A DNA stretch of 64,000 nt from Adineta vaga (lineage: Eukaryota; Animalia; Rotifera), in assembly GCA_021613535.1 (NCBI GenBank), contig CP075495.1, positions 15,314,001-15,378,000 of the forward strand, read 5' to 3'. The notes beneath the pieces are model-generated. The model made no database searches and had not been told where the DNA came from. It saw nothing but the letters and a program-made list of their open reading frames with translations. Shown one piece after another: positions 3,094 to 23,988 of this stretch. A program made the translations under genes and the position numbers. Position 1 is the first letter of the stretch, and the number at the start of each line of letters is the position of its first letter.

Positions 3094-6000
3094 TTAATTT
3101 TGTTTTTTCATTAATTCAAATGGTATTGTTGTTGGTTTCGATGGAAATAATTCATAAATCTCTTCAATTGAAATATCATCTTCAATTACAATTCGATCAT
3201 CATCCGTTAAAGCATATAATTCATATAAATGATAATCTTCTTGAGAAATATGTAATTTTTCTAATGTTTCTTTAAGAATTCTATTTACTAATATATCCGA
3301 AGTACATGGTAAAACAATTATTTGTTCATTGAATTTAATTGAACTATAAATTGATGTTGTTGAAATCAATTGTAATTGAATTTCTGTCATTTGAGAATCA
3401 ATATCATCTAAAGTAATATCTTCATCATCAAATAAACAATCATCATTCTTTAATTGATAATAATTTTTGTTTATAGAAAATAATTGACAAGCAATAGAAC
3501 GTAAATGTTCAATAGTTATTGTTAAAGAACAAGAAAATCGAATAGTTTGATGATTTTCAGTATTTTCAATGATAACATTGACGGGTAAATTTTGTTGAAG
3601 TAAAGTAAATCGAATTGGTGAAGTTGATCCAAAGGAAAATAATTGTGTATTGAGTGATGGAACAAAACTATCGGATGAAAGAAGAAATTGATGATCAATA
3701 TCGAATTGATTTTCTTGATAAATATCAGAAATCTTTGTAAATATTGTATATCGTTGATGAATATCATTATCATCTTCATCTAATTCAAGTAATTGATTAT
3801 TTTTAGGTTTTTCAATTGAAATAAGACATGTTTCATTTTCTTTAACTAAAATAAATTTTGTCTCACGTAAATTTGATAATTTTTCACAATAATCAACAAT
3901 TTTTTTTGTAAAATTTGATGCTAAATATTTATAAATATTTGATGAAACCTTACTTGATTGTAAGATATATTCCATAGTTACATTTCGATTAGGAAGAAGA
4001 ATTGAAATCGATTCGGAATTATCATATCGAACGATTTGTACCAAAATTGATATACGAAAATCAATAGATTGATTATCTGTAGTTATATAATTATCTACAG
4101 ATTGTTGCATATCATTTTGAGAAAGAATTTGTTCATTTGTTTCTCCTAAAACAAGAACACAATCATTAGGAGATATATCAATGAGTTTTAATTGTCGAAG
4201 AAGTTGATCATTGTTTAATAGATGAGAAATTCTCGTGGATTTTAATGCATAAATTGATGCTTTATTTGTTTCATAGGTAAATGTTACTTTTGTTGTTGTA
4301 TTACGATCTATTCCATCGATAATTATTGATTTTGTTGGTTCAAGTATCGAAGAAATCGATTGATCTTCATCAAGAATAAGTTTTTGTTCTTTATGAAGAA
4401 AAGCGAATTCATTCGTTGGTGAATCAATAAATTGAGCGAAATGTTTCAACCAATCATTAACATGTTGCCAATTAGCAGCTGAATGAAATAAACCGATTTG
4501 TTCTTGATCTATAAATAAACAAAAGTTAGGAAGGATTCAATTTTCATATGAAAGAGATTTTATGTACTTTGTTTTGTTTGTAGAGTAATTTGACAAAGAA
4601 AATTTTGATTAATATTCTCTTCAGTAACAATAATTGGAATGACTTTTGTTTCTGAATTATCCATTTGTTTGATCAGATCATTAATTGTTCCCTTTTCAAT
4701 TGTTGTTCCATGTTCGTTGAAGAAACAAAGATAACTTTCATCTGATGAAGGTTTTATATCTTGATCAGTAAGATAATGATGGATAATTGTTGAAATATTA
4801 CATTTTGATGTAACTAAATATTCGATTTGAGTTTCTTGAAATCGAAATTGAATTGTAAATAAGTGTTCTTTTTCAATAATAAAATATTCTTGAGAGATTT
4901 GTTTTGGTAATTTTCCATTAAAATCCAATAGAATATCATTTTTATCGCAAAGTGCATATTTATTCACATCATGTTTCTTCTCATCAAATAATTTACGTAA
5001 TCTCTCAAATAAATTTTCACTTTTCCCCATACTTGAATGAACATTTCCATCTGGATGAGTTACACTAAGTTTTAATCCTCCTTTTACAACTGTTATTGTT
5101 TGGTCATTTTCTGTACGAATTTGTTCGAATAAACTTGATGTTGTTAACGGAACTAATTTCAAATCCAATTGAAAAAGAGAAGAATAATCAAAAGATTCCT
5201 CTGAAGTTGTTGTTGTTATGGGTTGAGGAATTGGAACTATCTCTTTTTGTTCAGTAAATTCAATACCATCACCAAGTAAATCTTCTCCAATAATTGTATT
5301 CGATGACATATATTCTGAAAGATCTAACCAAATAGTATCGTCATCTGGGAGAGGTAGATTCTCTTCTACTGTTGTTTCATTAAGATAATTAAGAAAACGG
5401 TTGGGTTGTTGATGAAGAGATTTGTTATTAATACTTTCATTCCATTGTGTACTTTGTTTTTCTTCAATATTAACCATTCGTTCTTGTAATATTGTTCGCA
5501 TTCGAATTAAATGAATACAAAGTGCAACATAATTTTCACATTTAATTTCATTTGGAATAAAATTCAAAATCGAACTTTCAATTGCTAAGATTTGACATGT
5601 TTCTTTCAATGAATCTGCCCATTGTCGTTGAAGAAAATATTCATTTGTTCGAAGATCATTTAAGAAATCTGTAAGAATTTGAATAAACGATTTAATTCTT
5701 TCAATATCATCAATACTAATCGTTGCAGCTTGTAACATATCTGTAAGTTCATGATCAATTTGTAAATCAATAGATGTTCGTAAAGATTGAGAAACATCTG
5801 TGAATAAATGTTGAAAATCACTAATAGAATTCGCATATAATTGTCGAATATGATCAAAATAACATAATTGAAAATCTTTAATTTCGTATTGTTGAATTTG
5901 TTGATAAAGATTCTTTTCATGATCAAATGTTTGAATAAATTCATAAAGATTTCTTTGAGAAAGATCAGTTTGTTGATGTTTTAATTGTATGGCTATTTGT

Positions 6001-9000
6001 CGAAGAAGATTATAACCATGATAAAGTTTATCTAAATACATTTCTTTTAAATAATTCCATTCATTTTCTAATTGTTGTTCATTCAATGAAATACAATATT
6101 CTTTATTTAAATCAAATGTTTCATTGATTGTATTCTGTTGAGTTCGTCGAATATAATATTGATAATTTTGTATTATATGTTGATAATTAATACGACAAAG
6201 TAAAAGATATGTACGAATTAAATATGATTGAAGATAAAGAAAATCAAAATGAAGTTGAGTATCTAATTGTTGAAAATATTCATCATTTTCTATTAGAAGT
6301 GTTGCACGTGTTAATTGTTCAATCCATGAACAATCATGATCTGTTAATGTAATGACACCGGTATTATCATGAACAATTTGTAAAATGGAAACTTCTTTTG
6401 AAATTAAATTATTTACTAAAGTTTTCAATGCTCCAATGATATGATTATTATCATCATCATTTACTTCTTGTTCAAGTAAATTTAATAAACTATTGTGATA
6501 ATCAATCAATACTCTAAAATATTCAAAATAATCTTTATACTTGAATAAGAATGTGTTACATATCCAATCCTTACCTGAGTATACGCATAATAATATCTCC
6601 TTCGTCAGTATTTCCTGTTGTAACGAGATAATGTATTGGTGTATTACGTGTTATTTTTGTAAAACGTTGTGTAAGATCACAAGCACCTGGTCGAATAAGA
6701 CCATCAGTAAAATCATGATAGGCATTGACAGCTTCGATTCCATGATCGATAATAATTGAATAATTGGTATTATGATTATGATGTTGGAAATTTTGATGAT
6801 TATTCGAATGTTTTTCACCTCGTTTGTACAATTCTTCTAATGTAACATTGAGAAATTCATCTCGTTCAACTAATTGTGTATAAGTTTGATGAAGAAGAAG
6901 ATAAAATTGACTAAGATTATAAATCCATTTCATAATTTTCAAGAAATCAGTTGAATCAAGAATATGTCGTAAGACTTTCAGAGGTAATTGAAATGATACT
7001 GGATTATGTAATTCAGTTTTAAAATCTCGAAATTGTATTTGAATTGGAAGTTTTGTTATAAAATTTTGAAGATTTGATTGAATTTCTGATTTTAAACTTA
7101 ATCGATTAATAAAACTTTTATATTCTCCTAATTTTTGATGAATATAATAAAAGATTTTATTTTGAAATTCTTCTCCAGCTTTTAATTGATCATTAATCGT
7201 ATTATAAACAGGTTTTATCCAGGAATTTTCTGCTTGTTGATAATTTAATGTTAAAAATGCCATTCGTTCAAAACAACGATTTAAAAGAATACATGCATCA
7301 TTACAATTCGAATGAACTGATAAGAAATTAAATGTCGATAATAATCTTGCTCGAACAAAATGACAAACTTTTGTTCGTTGTTCATTTCCTGCAAGACGAT
7401 GTAGAGCTGTATTATCACCTATGGCATGTGGAGCAAGAATTGGTCCATGTAAATTTTGAACTGATTCACTGAATAACAATAGATGCCAAGCCTAAAATCA
7501 AGTATAAGAAATAAAAAACAATGAGATTCGAAACAAAACAAAAAAATACATACCATTGCACCAAATGTTGCAAAATATGCGACATAAATCGCTGGAACAT
7601 TTAATGCATTAGCATGTCTTTGACCGAAATGCATTAAATCGCCATTTTGTGTGATAATACAACCACAATCATAATGAACACCATGTTGTTCAATAGTTTG
7701 ATGTGCTGTTGATCCAAAACCTAAGAGAAAAGAAGAATAAATGTAAAAAATATATTCTTGTATAAAGATTTTACCAAATGTATTGAGTAATGTTAATGGT
7801 TGAAATGTAAATGTCCATAGGAAATTTTGTTTTCCTCCTAAAAGAATCATTGCTAAAAGATTAACTAATGAATGACGAATACATAATTCATCTTCATCTT
7901 TACAATCAAGATGAAATAATTTATTTAAATAATTTTGTTCAAGATTTTCATTTCGTCTTGGATATCCAATCATATAATGTTCAGGTTGTAAGAAAACACG
8001 AAAAACTCGTAATTCTTCAGGTAAAGGTTCTAATGTATTTTCAATAAATGCTAATAATGTACTGAGAGATACTAATCGATTTGTACAATAATAATCATAA
8101 TAAATATTTAATAATAACATTATTTTTATTTCTTTAAGATCGATAATACATGGATTTGTATTTCGTTGTAATTGAATCCAATCGAATAAACTCTTCCATT
8201 GTTGATCATTAACAAGATTTTCTTGAATAGAATTTGTAAGAATTAATTTTAATTGTTCGTAAGATTGATGAAATTGTGGAAAGATTGATAAAGTATTATC
8301 TGTTGATAAAGTAAATTGAATTTGATGACATAATTGTAAATGTTCATTTCGTTGTGTTGTTTGTTGAATTTCTAATAATTGAGATAATTGCTTTGCCCAT
8401 TCATGATGAAAACGTTGAATTGAATCAGATTTGAATAAATTTAAAAGAAAATTCCATGAACGTTTTGAAATAATTGTCGAAAGAAATAATTGAAGATGTT
8501 CATTCAATTGAATTATCTCACCATTTATAGTTAAATATGATGGAATAACCATTGCTAGAATTCGATCAATACTTCGTTTATCATCAGGAGAAATATTACT
8601 TTGACATAATAGAATCGCTGTTAGTCGTACGAGAAAATAGATTTGTAAATGTGTAAAAAATTCTTGAATAATATTTGTAAAACGTTGATTTCGTAAATTT
8701 GGAAGTTTTGATTGCATTATTTTATTAACAAATTTACATGTTATAATTTCATCATTAATCGATCGTTGAAGATAAAAGAAATATAAATCGAGAAGTGGTT
8801 GTCGTTGTTCATCAATCGAAATAACAGATGGATGATAAGGTAAATGATAATTTTGAATAATTAGTTCATCATTTCCAATACAATCAATAATCAATGTTAA
8901 AAGTTTGATTCCACGATCCCAACAATCTAATTTTTGTCGATTATTTCGTTCCGATTCTTCAAGATATAAATTAGCTAATTCATCAAATAGAAATTGTTTC

Positions 9001-12000
9001 ATTGGTAATGATAAATAATATGTTGATTGATTTAAATCTTTGAAAAGATTCTTTATTTCTTCATGATAAGAATCTGTTGTTGATTTTAACATTAAAATAA
9101 TCCATTGTTGTAAATCAATCATTAATGTTGAATTCTTAACATTATGATTATTTAAATATTTCTGAATAAATTCAATAATTTTCGGAATTAATTTAAAATA
9201 CATTGATTTACCAAATTGATTTTGATTTTTCAAATGAATATCATTTAATAAATTTCTTACAAGAGTTTTTGGTTCAGGTGTTTTATCATTAAGAAGAATA
9301 AGATATGCTAAATTCATAAAATTAATCTGATCAATTATTTCAGCAAGTTGTGTACGTGATAGAACTTTATTCGATGGATAATATTTCGAGATAAATGTAT
9401 AAGCATGAATCCATTTTTCACTATTTTCAAGATTATTTAAACAAAGATATTTCCAAAGATAATCGAACATTAATCGAAATAATTTTTCACGAACATCCGA
9501 ACGTGTTGTATGTTGTTCATCATTAAGAAATAAATCATTATAGAATGATCGAGTAGAATCAAGATGATCTGTTATACGACAAGCTGAATAGAGAGAAAAA
9601 AGATCATTTTGATCATATTCAAATGAAGTATAAACATGTGATAAAAGCCAAATAGATTTTTGTGAACAATCTTCAAGAGATTGTTGATCGTTTTCATCGA
9701 CGAGTAATAACCAACGTGAAACAAATTCAATTGTTTTTTCACATTCAGTAAGATTATCATCGAAATTTTTTTCTACAATTGTACAAAATGTTCGAACGAG
9801 ATCATTGGAATATGAATTAAGAATTTGTTCATTAATTATTTCAGTTAAAACTTTATCATTTAAAATTGATTTCATTAATCTATATCGAAAATGTTCAGAC
9901 GAATCATTTTCATCATCATTATAATGATAATCGACAGTAGTAGTAGTTGGTGGAACAGCATAATAATCTTGACGAAGTTCATCGGAATTGTTTTCTAAAT
10001 AATGAATAAAAAAAGTTTGAAATTTGTTTGTATGTAGATCGAGTTATCACTCAAAAATAGAAAGAAGTTCACGAACCTTTTTGTTGATTTTGTTTGAGAA
10101 TAGTTGATAATTTAATTTCATCAGCATATGATTTGATTCGTTGATGAAATAAATGATAAAGTGGTGTTTGTGGAATACAAGCATAATGAATACTAAGTTG
10201 AATAAGACCTTGTGATATTGTATCTTTATTTTCATCAGTTGAAAATGATGAATAATCAATTAATTCTAACATTGAATGATAATCATTTGTATTAGTTGAT
10301 AAAATCGAGAGAGTATCTAAACCATAATCATTAATAATAAATTTAAAAACATTAGAAACAAAATTTGTAAATGCAATTCGTGTTTGTGATTGAATTGAAT
10401 CGACAAGACCATCGAATCGTTTTCCACAAAGAATATCTTTCGATATTTGATAAATTAAACTATAAATTTTCTTTGATGAATCTTTTCGATTTGATAAATG
10501 TTCATGATAAATATTCATAATACGTTTTTGTAATTGTTTCGATCGTTGAAGAATTTGTTTGAAACATTGAACACGTCGTAAAGTATTCGTTTGAGATTGA
10601 TAAAATTCATAGGCTAATTTATCTTTGAACATATCAGGTGATAATTGTTGTTGAGAAATTTGAATACGTGAACAAAAATCCCATAAACAATCTTCAAATA
10701 AAGCATTTAAATCACATAGAATATTATCGGATGAATCACGTTGATCTGATGAAGAAAGTATTTGTAACATTTTTTGCAGATGAAATGCACTACCAGGTGA
10801 ACAACTATCAAAGAAATAGAAATCCCAATCTTGTAAGAAAATTGATGGAAATGATGATTGATGATAAAGTTCTTGTGGAGGTGAATGAATAAGAATTAAA
10901 AAGTATTTGTCTTGTTTTTTATTCAAAATATTCGATGTATAATCACTTTTGTCAATCAATTGTCGTACGTATGGAATATGTAAACGTTGTTGATTAATTC
11001 GAGCATTGATAACAATAAGAAGAACATTTTTTTTGTCATTTTTTTCAAAATTTTGAAATCTTTCTTCTAATTCAATGGAATTTTCAATGACAGCCTATAT
11101 AGAAGAAAATGAAATTATTTTGAAAAATAAAAGATAAAATAAGAACCTACTAGATTAAGTATATCGATTTTATCTGGATTATCCGTGTATTCATCATCAT
11201 TTAAACTACCAAATAGTTCATGACTTGATTGTTCATGAAGTCCAACAACATAAGATGATGTACGTGTAAATATCATGACTTTTCTAGTCATTTTTACTTG
11301 ATTTAATTGTGGTAATGGTGCATCTGTTGTTATTGCTGATAGATCATAAGTTTGAAGATCGAGTGATGGATTGGAAAGAAGTTGTTGAATAAAATTTTCA
11401 ATATGAAAATGTTCTTGTTGTTGAAAATAATTAATACATAATGATCCTGCAAGTTGATCTTCAAAAGTACGTAATTTAAGAACAAGTGATTCAGGTGAAA
11501 CTAATTGTAATAATTTTGATAGAACTGAACGTAAAATACATTGTTGAATATCACTTGGATTTTGTTCAATAAACGATTTTGAACGAATTGTTAATTGTGA
11601 ATAATGTTGATGTGTATTTAAAAAATAAGTTTGATCAGTTTCATTGAATTTCATTAAAGATAATAAACATGAATATAAAGTATTTTCATTAATACCATAG
11701 AAATATTGTCGACCAAAATGTTGAATAAATGATTGAAGTTTATCTTCAACATTTTTCATTAATGTTTGATCATTGGGTGAAAGTTGTTCAAATTGAATTC
11801 GATAAAAATCATTGACACTTAAAGAATATTTTTGAAAACGACTTAGAAATGGTGCTGGAATCTCTTTGAATTCACTTCGTTTAATATGTATAATACATTG
11901 AAAATCTTCATGAACAACAACATCAATGGTTTTCGGACCAATAGCTACTTTTGAAAAGATTTTTCTCATATCACCCGTAGCCATAATGGAAAAATTCTGA

Positions 12001-15000
12001 TTAAAAACATCATAAAGTGATCCATGAATTCGTCCGGTATTTACCATTAATATTGTCTTTCCAGTTTCCATACATAATTTGATAGTTGATAAAATTTCGA
12101 CATTTCGTAATTCATTATGAATATCATCAGGAAAATCTGACATTCGAAAAACAGTTGTACGATTAGGATCTAAATTAATAATTCCACTTTGTGAAAGTAA
12201 ACGAACAGCACTTTCATCTTCGGATTCATCAATAATTAATTTATATCGTCCATAAAGACGACGTCGAACTGAATCAAGTTTCATTGATTGACTTAAAATT
12301 GTTGGAACATTACGACGATTTGAAGGTAATCGAAAGTCGCGACATTGTTCTTGAACAGCTTGAAAAAATATTTGTACTAGTTTTTCAAAATCATCTTTTG
12401 ATATTCCATTAAAATTATCTTCCAATGCATGTAAAAGACTTATGGGTGTTATTCCTGCAAAACGTGCGTCTTGATTATTATTATTATTAGTATCATCATC
12501 ATCATTTGTTGTTGGTGTTAGTTCAAAACGTAATTCACGTAACATATAAATAAAATCACGATCGTGATAGATATGTGGAATATTTGGTTCATTCAATATT
12601 CGTCGATACCCTTGACAGAGACCATAAATAATCGACTGAAGACGCTGATCTACTACTTGTTGATTATCATCAATTCGAAGACCAAGACAACCATAAGCTA
12701 AAATCTTTTGATCATCTTTCGATGGTAAGGAACGATAAACACAAATCATTCGATTTGCATTTGCTGCATCGAAAGCTCTATTTGCTACAGCCACGAATGC
12801 TACTTTACATTCATCTAAATAAGGATGTAACACTTTTAACACCATTTTCTTTTCATCAGGTAGTGAAGCTTCATCCAAGAAAACAACCTATAAATTACGT
12901 AATTATTTTAATTTCTAGTTGAAATTTTGGCCATAAACTTACACATCGTGTATTCATTCGATTTTGTTCGTAATGTTGTTCACGTTTAATTGCTCGTTCG
13001 AATATATATGCAATATCTTCAGAACGACTATATTTTGATCCAAGACAAAAGAATGGATCAATAGCTGGCAAACGTTTACAGAATGGTTTCGTTGATAATT
13101 GGGAACCTTGAAGATTTTGTAAAACAATTTGAAAAGATAATGTTTTGGATTGACCTTAAATAGAAAAAGAAGTATATTAACAATGTTTACAAGTATAAAG
13201 TTAGCTGACCTGGTGCACCAATTATACACAATGGTGTTCGAGTGACAACACTAACCACAATTGAAAAGATATGTTCACGAACCTATCAAATAATAATAAT
13301 AAAGAGAAGAAAAGTCGAATGATTTCTCGAAATATAATTCACATACAGCTTGATTAATGGCAACACCATGTGGAATAACAAAATTATCTGTATTAACAAA
13401 TTTATCTAATTCATTTTGAATAATATTAATAAAATCAGGTATCGTACGAGAAAGTACTTCAGCAAGTTTTTCTCGTGGTGGTGTTTCATCGTCTCCTCTT
13501 TGTTCATTATCTTCAGCTGTGGGCAAACGAAAATAATAAATTAAAGCTAATGCTAATGCAATACATCGAATAGGATTTGGTTGATACATATCATTTTTTA
13601 TATCAATTTCATCATCAAATCGAATTTTCCAAAAGAAATCAATTAAATTAAAACATCGTTGAATTTCACGTTGAGAAACAGAATTACGTCCTAAAAAATA
13701 AAGATGTACATCAAAGATAAAACGATAGGAAAAAAATCTCAACTATTTACCAAGATATCGTTCACAAAATTCTTGTGCATTAAGAATCGATTCAGCCAAC
13801 ATTTCTTGAGCATATTTTTCTAATGGCATCTCCATTTGTTTTTTATCTATAGAATTTCCATGAAGTCTCTCAATTTTCTTATCAATATAACTTTTCAATG
13901 ATGATTGTTCTAATGCACCATAACAAACTTTTAAATTTTCTAATGCTTGTGGTAATTGATGGACGAGAAAATCTCGTCGATGAACAGCTTTCTCATCTGT
14001 TGATTGTACAAATGGATTGATTGCTGCTGTAAAAAAGATATTTTCGGGTAAATTTTTGCCATGTAATGTTCGATCCATAAACATTTCTTTGAAGAGACCA
14101 AGACATGATGCTGTATTAACTTCATCGAAAAAGACAACTAATTCAATATGAGATAATTCACGTGCTAATTGACAAATAGGAAACATAAATTGTTCAAGTT
14201 CGTCTTCTGTTATACCTGGATGTAATAATAAACGATAGAATAACGGTTTTATTTGACTATATATCACATATTCATTGAATATTTCAATAGATTTTTGCAC
14301 AGTTAATGAGCGAGTGTCTTCGAGTAACGTTCGAAGACGAAAACCAGTTTCAATTAAAGGAAAATTAGTTAACTGATAAGTGACATATTCAAGTAATTCA
14401 TTCATCAAGTTTTGAGCAATATTCATAGCATTTTCGCTGGCGACAATCATAAGTGTTTTCCATAAATATCTTAACATTTCATTGTTATATTCAAAATTTT
14501 GTAGAGATTGTTTAATATCTTGTAATAACGGAAGATCGATTGGTACTATTGGTCGAATAACTTGTGCCGCTGCTACTGGCGGTGGTACAACATCTGGTTC
14601 AGGTACACGATGCGCCAAACTTTCGTTGAATTCATTTTCAAAATCATCGTTTAACTGTTGACGATAGATATGCGCAAGTTGATTTTCTCTTACTTCACCA
14701 TCATCATCATCATCATCATCATCAACAACAACTTGATCGTCATTATCAAGACCCATAAGTTTTGGTTTTATTCGTTGTAAAAATGTATTTAATAAATTTG
14801 TTTCACTTTCTAATATTTCCGAAATAATTGTTGTTAATAACCATAAACTAATTCGTTCTCGTACTCGTGGAGCAACATTATCATTAATTGGTGCATTGAT
14901 TATATTCGAATTCAATAACAGAGAATAGAATTTAAGAAGAAATGTTTTTCCAACTCCCGTATCACCTTCAATGATCAACGATAATTTCGTTAATTTTCTT

Positions 15001-18000
15001 TCATGAACATGAAATAATTTATAAGCAAAATTTTCTGTTAATATAAACTTTGTTTCATTCATAATTTGAATGAAATCTTCATATTTAATATCGATTAACC
15101 ACGATAAACATTTCGCATAATAATCTTTACCTCGAAATTCTGGTCCAGAAAACGGATTTTCATTATGAAATAATTGTTTTAATGGTCGTGAAACATGATT
15201 CCAATCATCATGTAATAAATGCAAAGCAAAATATGGATCATAAACAAGATAAATTCGTGGATAATTTCTAATACTGAAGTCAATTTGAGAAAGAGATTTT
15301 GCTTCATTGATCATTTGTTTTAAAGCAGTTGAACCAAGAGTTTTATCTAACATATTATAACGATAAAAATGACCGGTAAAAAATTTCGCTCGACGATATA
15401 AAAATTTCGTAAAGGAAAGTTCGGAAATTTTATTTCGTGGTAATTCTGGTGCATATTTTTTAATACAATCATAAATATAATGACGACATTCATCTGGATC
15501 GGTTAGTTTGTCGAAATCAACAGGTTGATCTTCACCATTTGATTTCACAATACATTGACGATCAATAGTTTGATTTTCATAAGCTTTTAAAAATCGAGCA
15601 ACTAATTCTTCTTCTTCTCCGATGAATAATTGATAATTTTCATTCGTAATTTCATCTAACGTATTTGATGAAATGATCGATAAAATTGGTAAAATTCGAT
15701 CGAAATTTTCTTTTATTGTCATTTGATATTGATCTGTATGAGGAATTTCTATAAAAAATTTCCATTGTTTATTTTCCGGTAATGAAAATGTAAGACCAGT
15801 TGTATTATCTGTTAATGCTCCACTAATAAATAAGGAAAGTAGAGTACGATTCAGTTGTTCAAATGGTGCATGAATTGATATATTAAATGAAACAGATGGA
15901 TTCGTTTCATTTGAATTTCTTGAATCAAATGAAAGAAATGAACTAATTAACATTGATAAATTTAAAGTATCATTAATACTAAAACAAGATGTTTCAGATT
16001 TTTTATATTTTGTATTGATTCGATGTGTTTTACCTAATGAAAATTAAATGAAGATTACGGAAATGAAAAAATAAGAAATGAATTTACCAATTCCAGCTTT
16101 TCCACAAATGATTTGAATTTGTGATTGTATCCAATTATTTTGTTGAAATAATCGTGTTATTTGTGTATATGTATGATAAGGATGACGAAATCTAGGTGGA
16201 ATATGAAATAATCTTAAACCTTTTCGACTTATTGTTAATTCTTTTGAAAAATAATAAACAGTTCCATGTGGTTGTTCGAATTTTGTTAATTCTTCTTGTT
16301 CTTTTAGAAGAATTTCACGAAGACGATGATGCATTTTATCGATATCCATAATAACAAATATTAAATGTCGAAAGATTCGTATACGAAGAAAAAATAATCG
16401 AATATCATCTTCATTTACAATTGAACACCATAGAATTTGATAAACCGATGGTAAACGATCAGCAAAGAGATTTAAAAGAACACAACAAGTATCAAGATCA
16501 AAATCATGTTCAATAGATGTTTGTTCAGATGGATGTGCCCGTGTAGAATGAATTGTAACAAGATATTGTTGATTTTCATTCGTTGTTTTATTTCTTTCGA
16601 ATAATTCTCTTCCATTATTAAAGATTTTTTTTAAAAATTCAGATAATTGTTCTAGACCGGTTTTTGCTGGTGAATTTGGTTCAATTTTATAAATTTCATA
16701 AAGACGTTGAACATTTGCTTCTGATAAATCACAATTATTAATTTTTAAAGAACGTAAATAATGTATTAAACATTGAATTGTTAATTGTAATTCTTTATCT
16801 TTATTTTTAGAAATATCTTTTGATAATGAGAATTTTTCGAGAAAATGACATTTAATTTGATTTTGTCGTGTTGATGTTGTTAAAAGAATGATAAGAATCA
16901 TTATTTGACGATTACAAAATAAATTAACTAGATGATTATGTTGTCGATATTCAACTAAATTTTGTATCCACATATCATAACTTGTTTTTAATGCACGATA
17001 AATTAATTCTAAATTATCTGTACGTGTTTTCACAGCACGTTTTAATCGATCTTCTCGTATACGATGATCATCTCTTAATTCGGAAAGTATTTGATCGATT
17101 TCACCTGAAACGATAAAAAGCTTTTAGTGCTATTGCTTCGGGATTGAAAACGTGAAACACGATAGATCTGTTTTTATTGATAGTGAGGATGAATGTGGGC
17201 TATTCTCATCCACGTCCAAACCCTCAAAGTGGTCCAAATGTCTGCTCATAAACACTTCAACACTCTCTTTCAGATCGTGTTTCACAAAACAATAAGAATT
17301 AAAGTAATTGTTCATTAATTTGTTTTGTTTTTCTTACCTGATCGATCGGATATTTCATAATCTTCTTCTCTCACTTGATATTCAGGATGTCCAGCTGTTT
17401 CTAATTTACAAAGAATATGAAAAATATTTTCAACAATTTTTAATAATTTTAATTGTTCATTTAATAGAATCTTTTTATAGAACATATTTTCTTGAAGATC
17501 AACATTACAAAATGTTAATTGACGTTTATGATCATCAATATCACTTTTTGTCAAAGTAAATTTCAATACTTCAGATCGATTATATTCATCATCATCATCA
17601 TCAGTTTCATTTGGAAGTTTTTTAATTGAATATCCAATTTCGAAAAAAGATTGTTCATTAAGTAAACGTCGAAGATATATTTTAACTGTTCCTGTTCTAT
17701 ATAAATGTTCCATTGTTATTAAGGCATTATCTAATACTGTTGTTTCTTCAGCTGATAACCACATTTTAATAATTTGTGCATTTTCATTAACAACTAAGAA
17801 GAGAACGAAAAAGATTTTTCTTTTAGAATTTCAAATTAGATTACTTTGCATATGTTTAACTGAATGTTCTTCAAAATTTGATAATCTTGCAATACGATCA
17901 ATAAATTCATCAAAAGTTTTTGCTTGATGAACAAATGGTTCACATAAAGCATAAGCAATAATCCATGAATTTAAAATCATATTATTACGTTCTTGTAATT

Positions 18001-21000
18001 GAAATTGTGTTGTTAAATTATCTCGTAATTCTTGAAATCTTCTTCGACCATGTGGAGAATAAAGATCAGATTTTTTCATAATTTCAATAATTAATGAACA
18101 TTCCGAAGCTGTTTTAATCAATTGTAAATGTTGACTTGAAAGACTTTGAAATTGTTGTTTTAAAATATTATATGCTTGAGTTATTTCTCTTAATGAACAA
18201 TTTTCATCTCGTAAACGTTTTAAATGATTAATAAATTCATCATCATTATCATTGGATAAAATATCAAATTTTTCAATACAATCAATAATAATATTAATAT
18301 GACTATAATATTGATAAATTTGAAGCCATTCACAAACTTGTTCAATTTCTTGATCAGTTGGAATTGTTGTTAAATGTTGTCGATTATTATCTGATGAACG
18401 ATTTGTAAAAAGTTTTTTTACTTCTTCACGTATTCGAATATTTTTATCACAAAATATTGTTTTTAAATCTGTCATTTCTCTTAAACTAACACTACCATTT
18501 AAAACTTGATCAATAAATTTAAAAACTTTATCAAGTAATTCACTAATATCCTTTTCTTTTATTGTTTCTATTGATCCTTTATGATACGATTGATAAAACA
18601 TATGAAATATTCCATTAAATAAATGACAAGTTGATAATGGTTTTTCAATGATTCGATACCAAATCGTTCGTGGATTATGAAGACGTTCATTATCAATTCG
18701 AATGATTAATTCACCGGCTCGTTGTGTTTCAAATTCTCCTTGTAAAACATATTTTTCAATTGAAACATCTTTCTTGTCAAACAAACGACCAATATCACCT
18801 TGTACTTCTGATGATTGATATTCAATATGAATATTACATGGATGTTTATCACTTGCAATCGACCATTGAACATGTTGACGATCGTGAATAGGAAACGGAT
18901 TTATGATATTTGATTTTGCGGGTACAGGAAAAGAATTATTTGGTTGAAGTCGTTTTAATTCACGAATATAATTTGTTGAATCCATTTGAATATTCAACAT
19001 ACCCGAATCAATCACTTGAAATGGTGATAAACAATTAAATAAATGACAAAGTCGTCGAAGATCAGTAAAAACTCGAAGAATTTTTAATGTTCGTTCAACA
19101 ATTGTCTTCATATGAAGTAGAGGAATAGATGATTGACTTTCTTTTGCATTGCAAATTTCACGAAGTAATTGAGCAGTTCCTTCAACATTGCAATTTCTAA
19201 GCCATTCAATAATATGTAATGAAATTGTTAAGAATTTATCAAACCATTGTAACCAATCATTAATTTGTTCAATAAATTGTTGGAAATATTTTTCTTCGGA
19301 ATTATTTAATTCGATGTTGACATCTTTTGGGATAGGAGAGAGAAATGATTCGATTTTTGGTGGAATAGAAGGAAATTTATAATGTTGTGGATTGATTGTT
19401 TTAAATATTTGTTCGAGATCGGAATTGACAAGAAAAGAATATGCAATGGTACGATTGAGTAGATCACGATATGTTAAACAAGATTCTAAAAGGAAAGAAA
19501 TGGATTTATTAAATTTATCTTTTTTTTATTGAAAATAAAATAGACCTTGTAAAAGTAAGATCTTTTGAATTGATTTTTGTCCATTTGCCATGAATTCATC
19601 TACTTGTTTTATATCTATTGGATACATTTGTTCTTGTCGAATATTTTCGATAAAATAAATGATTGATTCAATATTAGGAAGTGATAAAATTGATTTATTT
19701 GATTTAATAATATAGAATTCAAATAGATTGATAACTAAAATAATTGTTAAAGTATCAGAACTTTGATAAATATCATGTTGAACTACTTTCATCCATTCAT
19801 TTAATTTAAATAGTGCCTCATCTGCATTCTCTGTTCTTGATTTGAGAATACTTAAATGTATTATTCTATTCCATATGTAAATTGTCCATCGATTATTATG
19901 ATGATGATCACATAAAGATTGGTAAGTATTTACATATAAATTTTGTGTAAAATCTTCAGGAATACGTAGAAGAAAATCTTCTAACCAGTCATCACGAATG
20001 ATCGATTCTGGATCATTGTTTTCACATAAATTTTGATCGAAATCATTTAAATTACGAAAAAGATTTTTAATTTTGTCAATTTTATTCATTGATCCAGTAT
20101 TTATTTGAAATAATAAACGACGAAGAATGAGTAAATAAGCTGGTTGATGTAAATCATGTGTTGTTGACATATCAAGACCAATAGCCAAAAGTTTTTTAAG
20201 ATCTGATTCTATATATTGATAAGAGTACTGCTCATTATTCAATTGTTTATTGATAAAACTATCGAATATTTTTTCATATATTTTTAGAAAACGTGAACGA
20301 TACTCTTCTTTAATTTTTGGTATACATTCGCTGGCAAATCTTGTATAACGTACAAAGTTACTGATACTTGTATTCATTGTGCGACTCGTAAGTTTAAAAG
20401 TGAGATGTTTTTGAATAATTTCATTCATTTCACTATCTGTTGATATTCGAAGAAATATCGCCCACAAATCATCAATATCGACACTTGTAGAATAAATTGA
20501 AAAATAAAGATCGAATAGTGACTCGTGACGACCAAGTAAACATAACAAACCACTAATTTGTGGAAATGTAAATGACTTTTGTTTTACACCATTCTCAAAC
20601 ATTGGTCGAAATTGTTCAAAAAATTCATCGACTTTCAAATTTAATATTTTACAAAGACGGAAGTAAATATTAAAAGGTGACTCAGAAGATTGTTTTGGAA
20701 TTGGATTTTTACTGAGAAGTTCAATAAATCCTGATAAATTGAATGGAAATTCTCGAAATGCTAATTCATAATCAATATATTTAGCGATAAAATCTTGTAA
20801 AGATATTTTATAATCTTGTACATTGAATATGATCTGTTTCCATTGTAGATTATCTTCTAATAAATAAGATGATTGTAATGATAATTTAGCTAGAGCAAGA
20901 AATAAGGGCATTGTTTGTATATCGACTTTAGTTATTGACATTAAATGTTGATTAATATCGAGTTTTCTCAATTGATTTCTGTCTGTTATTGATAAATTTG

Positions 21001-21550
21001 GTTGCAAACCTTTTTCTTTCACAAAAACTTGTGATAATAATTCGAATAATTTTTCTTTGAATTTTTTCAAATTGTCTTGATAACCCCATTTCCGATATAC
21101 TGAGTTTTTAATAATTGCCAGATATTCTTCGATTCGACGATACATATATAAATATGAATCAATGCGACTTGAGAATTTTTTCTGTAATTCATCGGTTGTT
21201 AGACTACTCATTATGCATTGAATAATAAAATCTACATCATTTGAAAACGATTTATTCTCATCAGCTTGATTTGCTTGATCGAAATTTTCAAAACGGGCCA
21301 GCACAGCATCATAAAATGATACACCTTCACTGTCTTCATCAAATACATTGCTAATACATACAGCCGATCCAGTCAATTTTTCTTTGCCAGAGAAAATTTC
21401 GTAGAACTTTTCATTAAACCCATTGAAATATTTGTTTTTAAATGTCACAAATATCTTAAATTAAACAAGAAAAAAATACTTCTAAACCTTGACACTTTTC
21501 ACAGATGGGCTTAAGAAGAAATGAAAGATTTGTGTTATGAAAGAATGCAT
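3094..21550 (-). CDS. Giant RNF213/mysterin-like AAA+ ATPase (~16 exons, ~5,800 aa est.) with GOLD-like domain and C-terminal tandem ubiquitin-like domains
   Basis: Consecutive minus-strand ORFs joined by short GT-AG introns, in frame where checked; P-loops GKAGI/GKT (split by intron ~16035-16087), GDTGVGKT (14943-14966), GAP/GQSKT (split by intron ~13155-13209); Walker B VVFFDEVNT and FLDEASL; FTAAINP, VSQREIQR, ANRAFDAANANR, RDF, PFLSRFQK; start ATG 21550 needs a 33-nt first intron (uncertain). Confidence 0.85.
17152..17285. mobile_element. Small inverted-repeat (MITE-like) element inside the longest intron of the RNF213-like gene
   Basis: gtgaaacacgat(aga t)ctg at 17152-17170 vs cagatcgtgtttcac at 17271-17285; intron ~230 nt versus ~55 nt for the others. 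Confidence 0.5.
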
Positions 21551-22704
21551 GCCGTCGATGAAGAAAAAAACCCAGTCTTTTTCTTTCTTTCTTCCAACAG
21601 AAAGGAAAATAAAAAACACAAACTCGACTTTCCGTTGAAATTCTATATTTCACGTTATTGTAAAATAAACTTTCATATGTATGGTTTTATTGCTGTCATT
21701 CTCTAAAGTTTCTTATGAAAAAATGTATCTATATATCATTTATGATATGTTTCGAAGAGTAACGAAAAACAATGTTGTTCTTTCAATGTGAAATGTGAAT
21801 TTTTACTGTTGACTTCATTTCTTATCGCAAAGCGGCGCATTAGAGAAAGAAAAAATATTCTTGACATGACTCATCAACTGCAGCTAGGGAAGTTTTATTC
21901 TCCAGGAAAATGGTAATAAAATAATCAGTTTATTTGAACTATAAATAATGAAGAACATTTTGTTGAGAAATGAATTATACTTAACATAATCCATCAAATT
22001 AGGCTGAGCATTTTGAAAATTCTTAATTGTGGATAAATTAGTTGGTTCTTATCACAATCAAATGATGTTACTCGTTATAAACATTGAATTAAATCGAATT
22101 TTTTGATCGCCTACAAAATAAATCGTTTTTATTAAAACTGATTGGAACAACAACCTGAAACACTTTGCATTGAAGCTAAACGTTTACATTCTTTATCATA
22201 CAATTTTTTTGTCTTGATAGAACGACGGATCTGTGTATATAAACATGCTGGTTAGAACTAATAGAAACCGTAACTATCTATCAATCAAGATAACGAAATT
22301 TCATAATGTCTACATAAGACAATTCATTGTCGATCGAATGGAAAAAACTTTATTGATCAATCTGTATCTTTCGCTTTAATTTTTATTTGTTTGAGAGTAA
22401 GCGTGGGCGTCATTATTTCATGTACACACGTCTCACTCGCATTTTTGTATGTTGCATTGAATAGATAGTCAAATAATAAAATATTTATCTAAATGCAATA
22501 TGTCATGATTACTTGCCAAGTGTTACGTGTTCTTCTAAATTAGAACATGGTCGAATGTCTTACAAAACATAATCTATGCGCGAAAAGAATAAGTATATTT
22601 ATGTTGTGATCTTAACAAAAAACGAAAGATGACATTTATACAATCGCGTTCTCAATCCTTTCATATCTTTATTGTAGATATTGTCGTTGACAATCAAATT
22701 CAAA

Positions 22705-23988
22705 ATGTATTGCAGGCTCTGTGTACTTTATTTCTTTACTTTGATTCTAAATGGAATTGCTTTGAAAGAAGTTGATTCCAATGTTCGAAAACAAAAGACA
22801 ATTGATAATAATTTATTGGAACGATTGCGTGCAATGCAAACTGAATTGAATGTAATTCGCCATGATATTCACGCTCATCCAGAAACAGCAATGAAAGAAA
22901 TACGTACTTCTGCATTGGTCGCTGTTAAACTTAAACAATGGGGTATCAATGTTACTGAAAAAGTAGGTAAGATGGGTGTAGTCGGTACATTGAAGAGTGA
23001 TGAACTAGGCTATGGTTCGATCGGTTTACGTGCCGACATGGATGCTCTTGAAATTAATGAACAAAATAATCTACCGTATATTTCCACAATTCCTGGTCTC
23101 ATGCATGCTTGTGGCCATGATGGACATACTACAATGTTGCTAGGTGCAGCTAAATATCTAGCAGAACATCGAGATTCATTTCGTGGAACTGTTCATTTTA
23201 TCTTTCAGCCAGCCGAGGAAAAAGAGAATGGTGCCTTAACCATGATCAATGATGAACTTTTTGATCGATTTCCAATGGATGCAATCTACGGATTACATAA
23301 TTCTGCAGGTATTTCTGTTGGACAGTTTGCTACACGATCGGGTCCATATATGGCAGCGTCTGGAACTTGGATTGTGACGTTTCGAGGTACTGGTGGTCAC
23401 GGTGCAACACCACACTTAGCTACCGATGTTACTATACTACTAGCACAATTCATTGTCTCATTACAAACTATCGTTAGTCGTAATGTTGCACCAATGGATG
23501 CAGCGGTCATCAGCGTAGGTGTTATCCAAAGTGGTTCCTTTAGTTCATTGAATGTCTTACCATCGGAAATTCGTGTTGGTGGTACTACACGTAGTTATAC
23601 GAGAGAGGTACGTGATACAATCGAACGACGGATACAAGAACTGGCACAGGGTCTTGCTACTAGTTTTGGATGTACTGCTGAAGTGGTATTCCATCGAAAA
23701 GGATCTCCACTTGTCAATGATTTGCTGTCCACGCAGAGAGCTATTAAAGTAGCTGAAACTCTCGTGGGTCCTGAAAACGTCGATGGAAACGCAGCACCAA
23801 TAATGAGTTCAGAAGATTTTGCTGAATTCCTTGTAAAAAAAGCGGGTGCCTTCATTTCTATGGGAATTGGAAATCGAAATGGTGAACTCCATTCACCAAC
23901 ATACAACTTCAATGATAATGCAACTATTTTCGGTGTGGGCTACTGGGTAAGTCTTGTGCAACAAGAACTGCATACATCTAAATTGTGA
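22705..23988 (+). CDS. M20D amidohydrolase (hippurate hydrolase/Acy1-like), intronless, N-terminal signal peptide; HGT candidate
   Basis: RHDIHAHPE, LRADMDAL, MHACGHDGH, FQPAEE, GLHN, GTGGHGA, SEDFA, LHSPTYNFND; first ATG 22705 followed by hydrophobic leader. Confidence 0.92.
   Translation: MYCRLCVLYFFTLILNGIALKEVDSNVRKQKTIDNNLLERLRAMQTELNVIRHDIHAHPETAMKEIRTSALVAVKLKQWGINVTEKVGKMGVVGTLKSDELGYGSIGLRADMDALEINEQNNLPYISTIPGLMHACGHDGHTTMLLGAAKYLAEHRDSFRGTVHFIFQPAEEKENGALTMINDELFDRFPMDAIYGLHNSAGISVGQFATRSGPYMAASGTWIVTFRGTGGHGATPHLATDVTILLAQFIVSLQTIVSRNVAPMDAAVISVGVIQSGSFSSLNVLPSEIRVGGTTRSYTREVRDTIERRIQELAQGLATSFGCTAEVVFHRKGSPLVNDLLSTQRAIKVAETLVGPENVDGNAAPIMSSEDFAEFLVKKAGAFISMGIGNRNGELHSPTYNFNDNATIFGVGYWVSLVQQELHTSKL

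Follow-up and report, generated by a model that had tools for sequence, protein, structure and literature searches.

RNF213 (mysterin), a giant vertebrate protein (PDB 6TAX, 7OIK), is to our knowledge the one ligase shown to ubiquitylate lipid A of bacteria, an activity that resides in its RZ finger. It is an E3 ubiquitin ligase activated by ATP, with a catalytic dyad (Cys4462/His4483) in the RZ domain (PMC12075652), and its parts follow one another as distal N-arm, linker, six-AAA core, hinge, E3 scaffold and C-terminal domain (CTD), the names used here being those of its published domain map (PMC7311170). Here, we describe a gene of the bdelloid rotifer Adineta vaga, on the minus strand of a 64,000-nucleotide stretch of contig CP075495.1 (positions 15,314,001 to 15,378,000 of assembly GCA_021613535.1; hereafter the window), whose predicted product is likewise giant and collinear with RNF213 in all these parts. 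We consider it probable that the locus is an intact, single-gene machine of the RNF213 superfamily, belonging to a clade without the RZ finger in which a short loop with the signature D-C-G occupies the finger's position, equipped with a GOLD domain and a tail of ubiquitin-like (Ubl) domains, and operating broadly along the lines proposed below.

The homology is carried above all by the comparison of profiles. A full-length family profile aligned with a canonical RNF213 profile in hhalign at probability 100 and an E-value of 3e-161 over 3,219 columns, in a register that sets residues 929-4911 of the deposited rotifer protein (I4U23_010595, 5,692 residues; working identifier P0139) against residues 1004-4917 of the 4926 of a bird RNF213; residues 1-928 and 4912-5692 of the rotifer protein are therefore extra. 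Compared with RNF213, its first 930 residues, GOLD domain included, are unrelated, and some 780 residues, the Ubl domains among them, are added at the C-terminus. Within the matched body, three P-loops and two Walker B motifs follow one another as they do in AAA2-AAA4 of RNF213: a Walker A is present in each of the three modules and a Walker B in AAA3 and AAA4, at positions matching those of RNF213. In phmmer searches against RNF213 chains of the PDB, the AAA4 exon matched at E 1.4e-17 over 340 residues, starting from Walker B (VVVLDEVGL), and the AAA3 exon at E 4.6e-5, at both Walker motifs (the queries of all searches were single exons, the deposited protein or other database proteins). Pfam profiles, run over all exons, gave only a sub-threshold match to AAA_22. 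An earlier note, made from the letters of the window, had proposed an RNF213-type AAA+ machine with just this number and order of motifs and had pointed to the CTD-like strings HYLVTT, VLIDYHN and FDFLYLQ; the former is what the profiles and alignments recover, and the strings are present inside the match to the RNF213 C-terminal region. Judged by its sequence, the product is a giant AAA+ protein belonging to the RNF213 superfamily, for which collinearity would predict a six-AAA, dynein-like ring. Unlike that of RNF213, AAA3 of the rotifer protein holds an acidic (poly-Asp), proline-rich insert of about 190 residues between its Walker A and Walker B motifs (at ~14723 in the window; residues ~2006-2196 of the model).

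What has become of the modules that perform ubiquitylation? Paired C-x2-C...C-x2-C motifs and the C3HC4 RING pattern occur nowhere in the protein, no Pfam zinc finger matches it, the RZ finger (PF20173) included, and the C..GH..CG..C..C pattern of the latter is absent from the open frame. Among the more than 100 giant relatives collected, a RING stands at the equivalent site in only two, both of them bird RNF213s, and it is missing from sampled non-vertebrate RZ-bearing members too; with the RING confined to birds among the collected proteins, its absence is not special to the rotifer gene. At the position of the RZ finger and its Cys/His dyad, RNF213 and the rotifer protein part company, the latter having a six-residue loop, HYDCGC, in their stead. 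When a profile of 47 members around this loop was aligned by hhalign with a profile of nine RZ-bearing RNF213-like proteins (probability 98.7, E 4.7e-16, 596 columns), HYDC came to stand opposite WYEC and GCIITQNG opposite C-x3-IGG, and the loop had no equivalent of the RZ hairpin, the part of the finger that bears the catalytic Cys as well as the His ligand and the third ligand. The D-C-G loop could nevertheless be the counterpart of the RZ catalytic cysteine, because in RZ fingers that residue also sits in an [E/Q/D]-C-G context. The loop cysteine is kept in 65 of the 71 aligned clade members (D-C in 63, with G next in 53), which range from bdelloids to Naegleria, Pelomyxa, Balamuthia and sponges, the form being HYDCGC in bdelloids and D-C-G clade-wide; such retention makes it a candidate zinc-free active site. 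The earlier statement that no zinc domain is recognisable thus holds for the RING and the canonical RZ finger, but the RZ site is not empty.

This form of the machine is by no means peculiar to rotifers. A search seeded with the homologue from Gefionella returned 133 giant proteins, the nearer of which lack both PF20173 and RING; according to precomputed Pfam lists, PF20173 is found in a distant group only, and RZ-bearing proteins, including cnidarian and vertebrate RNF213, stand far lower in the list. The RZ-less proteins come from bdelloids (Adineta, Rotaria, Didymodactylos), sponges (Sycon, Oscarella, Amphimedon), Amoebozoa (dictyostelids, Pelomyxa, Physarum, Balamuthia, Mastigamoeba and others), Heterolobosea, a diplonemid, a kinetoplastid, a malawimonad, Picozoa and a diatom, and in a separate search a choanoflagellate (Codosiga) protein matched the exon of the E3 region. 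In a tree of the AAA3-AAA4 region, 54 RZ-less rows, the rotifer protein with them, stand apart from the RZ-bearing rows; the branch between the two sets has a length of 1.83 and a Shimodaira-Hasegawa-like approximate likelihood ratio support (SH-aLRT) of 100. On these grounds the predicted RZ-less, RING-less proteins are a separate, old and eukaryote-wide clade, and the notion of a 'distinct invertebrate class' that the earlier note had put forward fails, given the same form in sponges, a choanoflagellate and protists. Proteins of the type of Gefionella okellyi EP00698_P000161, Sycon ciliatum XP_065175970.1 and Dictyostelium DDB_G0290641 share with the rotifer one the clade, the D-C-G loop and the lack of both RING and PF20173, and similarity in the E3 region is visible to phmmer (28% identity to Gefionella). 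Unlike the rotifer protein, sponge and protist relatives carry SAM, USP/UCH, SPRY, vWA, SH3 and FN3 domains; the fusion of some to USP-type deubiquitinase domains (PF00443) links the clade to ubiquitin biology. In the same tree the bdelloids are monophyletic with support of 100. Horizontal transfer into them was considered, and the tree shows neither origin, because it leaves their sister group undecided between sponges, Gefionella and Picozoa. Members of the clade are deposited as hypothetical or unnamed proteins, save for a few sponge transcripts automatically named 'E3 ubiquitin-protein ligase RNF213', and a literature search combining RNF213 with rotifer, protist and evolution, subscription journals being outside its coverage, found neither the clade without RZ nor its D-C-G loop nor the combination of GOLD and Ubl domains described.

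The two ends of the protein, on the other hand, do set the bdelloids apart. Residues 1-900 and 4801-5692, searched as phmmer tiles, were matched in bdelloids only, and the sponge and protist relatives gave no phmmer match to the GOLD-arm and Ubl-tail regions; the predicted GOLD arm and Ubl tail are thus bdelloid-specific additions to the architecture of the clade, and they alone of the proposed novelty are confined to these animals. For the first 780 residues, no Pfam family was found and Atlas features indicated generic helical scaffolds, with scores below 0.9. AlphaFold2, run on residues 700-1000 with 14 bdelloid sequences, predicted a beta sandwich at residues 808-906 (mean predicted local distance difference test score, pLDDT, 82.6), and a Foldseek search of the PDB returned GOLD domains as all of its top 23 matches, the best being ACBD3 (E 2.2e-7, template modelling (TM) score on the target 0.73-0.79, root-mean-square deviation 2.4-3.3 A), followed by SEC14L and p24. 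The fold is hence that of ACBD3, SEC14-like proteins and p24 cargo receptors. Unlike these, the rotifer domain has no match at the level of Pfam (no GOLD-type family at E <= 0.01) and lies within the helical arm of a giant AAA+ protein, an arrangement of which no description was found. At the other end, AlphaFold2 on residues 5040-5692 with 19 sequences (mean pLDDT 83.5) predicted eight beta-beta-alpha-beta-beta units, for which Foldseek returned linear tetra-ubiquitin (7yui, E 1.3e-13) and the HUBL tail of USP7 (E 1e-10), then di-ubiquitin, ISG15 and the tandem Ubl of OASL. Both the GOLD-like arm and the poly-ubiquitin-like tail of the earlier note are therefore borne out by predicted structures. 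Like the USP7 tail and linear poly-ubiquitin, the rotifer array runs head to tail, at a sequence identity to them of 8-16%; unlike USP7, it has eight units instead of five and sits on an AAA+ machine, not on a deubiquitinase. No C-terminal Gly-Gly is present, the protein ending in ...FELMKKQN, and the tail is therefore not a conjugatable precursor. About 20 homologues from bdelloids share this conserved tail, likewise C-terminally.

How might such a machine work? By analogy with RNF213 (PMC12075652), ATP binding at AAA3 and AAA4 would set the state of the E3-like module. The likeliest reactive residue would be the D-C-G cysteine at the RZ site, which might accept ubiquitin or a Ubl from an E2 without zinc. 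The GOLD arm may provide targeting to a membrane or a protein, and the Ubl array, working like the HUBL tail of USP7, may regulate the protein from within or offer ubiquitin-binding factors a surface to dock on. That the machine might serve cell-autonomous defence, as the earlier note's candidate immune role would have it, is plausible only by analogy with RNF213, and the different Ub/Ubl chemistry put forward in that note is likewise hypothetical. A much bolder version, in which the D-C-G loop is a zinc-independent site accepting ubiquitin or a Ubl, the clade a new class of transthiolating, ATP-gated E3s that is sister to RNF213 and spread across eukaryotes, and the eight bdelloid Ubls a 'ready-made coat' shown on targets selected by GOLD, seems to us unlikely as a whole. 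Was the RZ finger inserted into a D-C-G loop, or was it lost from one? The clade makes this question testable and, as a sister group that keeps the ATP-gated scaffold with a cysteine loop for the finger, it does the same for the contribution of the E3 scaffold apart from the finger. The bdelloid fusion of GOLD with eight Ubls is rare and lets one ask, as in a natural experiment, by what means the output of these machines is read; infection and desiccation challenges are feasible in bdelloids.

Several observations count against the reading of an intact machine with a reactive cysteine. In hhalign the loop cysteine is paired with the first zinc ligand of the RZ finger and not with the catalytic cysteine, a register that is itself unreliable within so short a motif, and no conserved residue of the clade corresponds to RNF213's catalytic His; together these leave ligase function not established. 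The E3 region found no match among PDB RNF213 sequences, whether searched as a single sequence or as a hidden Markov model of 16 sequences, just as phmmer with the four exons after the AAA core matched no PDB sequence, and it is thus linked to RNF213 only by profile-profile comparison. As to the gene model, the acceptor at 21382, after the annotated 5' exon, is weak and covered by 0 reads. RNA support is thin: the gene was not found in any run recorded as RNA, 5-7% of its sampled words turn up in three runs presumed to be RNA, and the short exon contigs from such runs reach depths of only 2-9. Moreover, a 151-nucleotide contig, from a run whose label names another organism, matches the window perfectly at 17028-17178 and is unspliced across the 17104 acceptor, reflecting either DNA carry-over or pre-mRNA.

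The most serious competitor that these points raise is a scaffold dead as a ligase, which lost transfer activity together with the RZ finger and serves as an ATP-gated sensor or remodeller, the bdelloid Ubls standing in for a ubiquitin coat and recruiting binders. The catalytic dyad and three of the four RZ zinc ligands are indeed gone under the hhalign register, there is no RING, and the tail is closer to linear poly-ubiquitin than to other fold classes. What is hard to explain on this account is why the cysteine, exactly at the RZ site, should have persisted in so many members for more than 1 billion years; moreover, most members of the clade have no Ubl tail, which therefore cannot be the ancestral output. 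We regard a dead scaffold as improbable and keep to the intact machine with its candidate cysteine.

Far less credible is a plain rotifer orthologue of RNF213 that ubiquitylates microbial surfaces in the human, RZ-dependent way. It could draw on the strong collinear homology and on the automatic naming of some sponge relatives, but RZ finger and RING were looked for and are absent, no further RZ exon is visible in the continuous frame, and the AAA3-AAA4 tree places the gene in the other clade. It also has to contend with two distant RNF213-like genes of A. vaga itself (C1:11.16 Mb and C6:6.30 Mb), found in the searched genome of 100.8 Mb in six contigs, whose PF20173-type fingers exceed the Pfam cut-off; the RZ-less machine thus coexists with RZ-bearing ones. 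The fingers of these two genes (C1:11163638-11163766 and C6:6303378-6303512) are of a variant form, ..FRCSKDCDW..NCGVP..CPLCKKQIGA.., with Cys in place of the RZ His ligand. Two further PF20173 matches, split by an intron, lie at C4:12206563-12206758 and C5:2011436-2011633, in what may be ZNFX1-like genes.

As regards the gene itself, the coding region runs from 21840 to 3097 as a single gene of 16 exons, 15 of which were joined here through GT..AG introns of 51-233 nucleotides, giving 5,703 codons uninterrupted by a stop, and the sixteenth of which is the annotated 5' exon; the minus strand shows a chain of long open frames within an AT-rich region (guanine plus cytosine content 24-31%). The gene already has a database entry, 'hypothetical protein I4U23_010595 [Adineta vaga]', which is 99.97% identical to the joined model across 3,744 residues and maps collinearly onto the window at 21382-3097 by tblastn. 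A single gene of about 16 exons is what the earlier note had read from the letters; the stop codon lies at 3096-3094, and with the annotated ATG at 21840 the gene extends past the 5' end of the span given there, 3094-21550. Our model comes to ~5,770 residues, as against the deposited 5,692. Segment 9212-8976 (79 codons) is treated as an intron in the deposited model; as it is open, in frame and conserved among bdelloid homologues (consensus MKQFLFD), its absence is likely to be an annotation error. The stretch 13347-13210 was rejected as a frameshift and resolves into a 64-nucleotide intron followed by a 73-nucleotide exon that codes for ...VVTRTPLCIIGAPG, the first half of the AAA4 P-loop. 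Likewise rejected were two mini-exons between 17338 and 17104, where a single intron of 233 nucleotides stands, as in the deposited model. For the intron at 7774-7721, the tblastn alignment to the paralogue on C3 has a gap at the same place, consistent with an intron there too. The passage from the CTD to the first Ubl falls inside one exon (6513-4568), which makes the fusion independent of any splice call. Two more full-length paralogues in A. vaga, at C3:12.40 Mb and C1:11.24 Mb, have the same order of parts. That two or more genes, or a pseudogene, have been read as one frame merits next to no credence: the unverified 5' exon, the 79-residue difference between the models and the sparse RNA coverage would fit an artefact or a decaying gene, but 17.1 kb of coding sequence are free of stops over the 15 exons with canonical splice sites, the CTD-to-Ubl transition is intra-exonic, and the full architecture is kept end to end in both paralogues and about 20 proteins of other bdelloids. 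The features are collected in Table 1.

Table 1. Features of the RNF213-superfamily gene, in window coordinates, with the evidence by which each was placed.
Feature	Position	Strand	Evidence or remark
Whole coding span	3097..21840	-	NCBI I4U23_010595; stop codon 3096-3094
Annotated first coding exon (MRRFAIRNEVN, 11 codons, ATG 21840)	21807..21840	-	N-terminus of I4U23_010595; 5' end uncertain
Helical N-terminal extension, bdelloid-specific	18935..21381	-	phmmer tiles 1-900 match rotifer proteins only
GOLD domain (predicted), eight-strand beta sandwich	18638..18934	-	AlphaFold2 and Foldseek
RNF213-collinear body (distal N-arm, linker, AAA ring, hinge, E3 scaffold, CTD)	5499..18571	-	hhalign
AAA2 Walker A, GKAGIGK/T	16026..16103	-	Split by intron 16087-16034
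AAA3 Walker A, GDTGVGKT	14943..14966	-	Aligned to RNF213 GETGCGKT in PDB chain
AAA3 Walker B, VVFFDEVN	14115..14138	-	Aligned to RNF213 ILFFDEANT (mouse construct 6tay 1917-1972)
Intron spliced out in probable RNA contig	13691..13750	-	Contig skips 60 nucleotides; CT..AC on plus strand, i.e. GT..AG on minus
AAA4 Walker A, GAPG/QSKT	13141..13219	-	Split by intron 13209-13155; exon conserved in both paralogues
AAA4 Walker B, VVFLDEAS	12864..12887	-	phmmer to RNF213 chain 9jwg 2474-2815
Vertebrate RING-equivalent site	8694..8825	-	hhalign: bird CKSC...CKIC faces VISIDEQRQPLLDLYFF...KFVNKIM; no Cys/His ligands
In-frame 54-nucleotide intron within long open frame	7721..7774	-	GTAAAA..TTAG ends; database matches break there
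HYDCGC loop at RZ-finger position	7659..7676	-	hhalign of I4U23_010595 3830-4629 against canonical RZ +/-400 residues
RNF213 CTD-like region (HYLVTT, VLIDYHN, FDFLYLQ)	5499..7491	-	Within hhalign match to RNF213 C-terminal region
Eight tandem ubiquitin-like (beta-grasp) domains (predicted)	3103..5078	-	AlphaFold2 and Foldseek

Inside the longest intron (17337-17105), positions 17227-17290 were covered to a depth of 1,971 in a DNA run of 2013, as compared with ~120 (a roughly 16-fold excess), with many loose ends, and are probably a high-copy repeat or a transposon fragment. Upstream, a divergent open frame of 435 residues occupies 22681-23988 on the plus strand, starting ~840 nucleotides from the annotated ATG.

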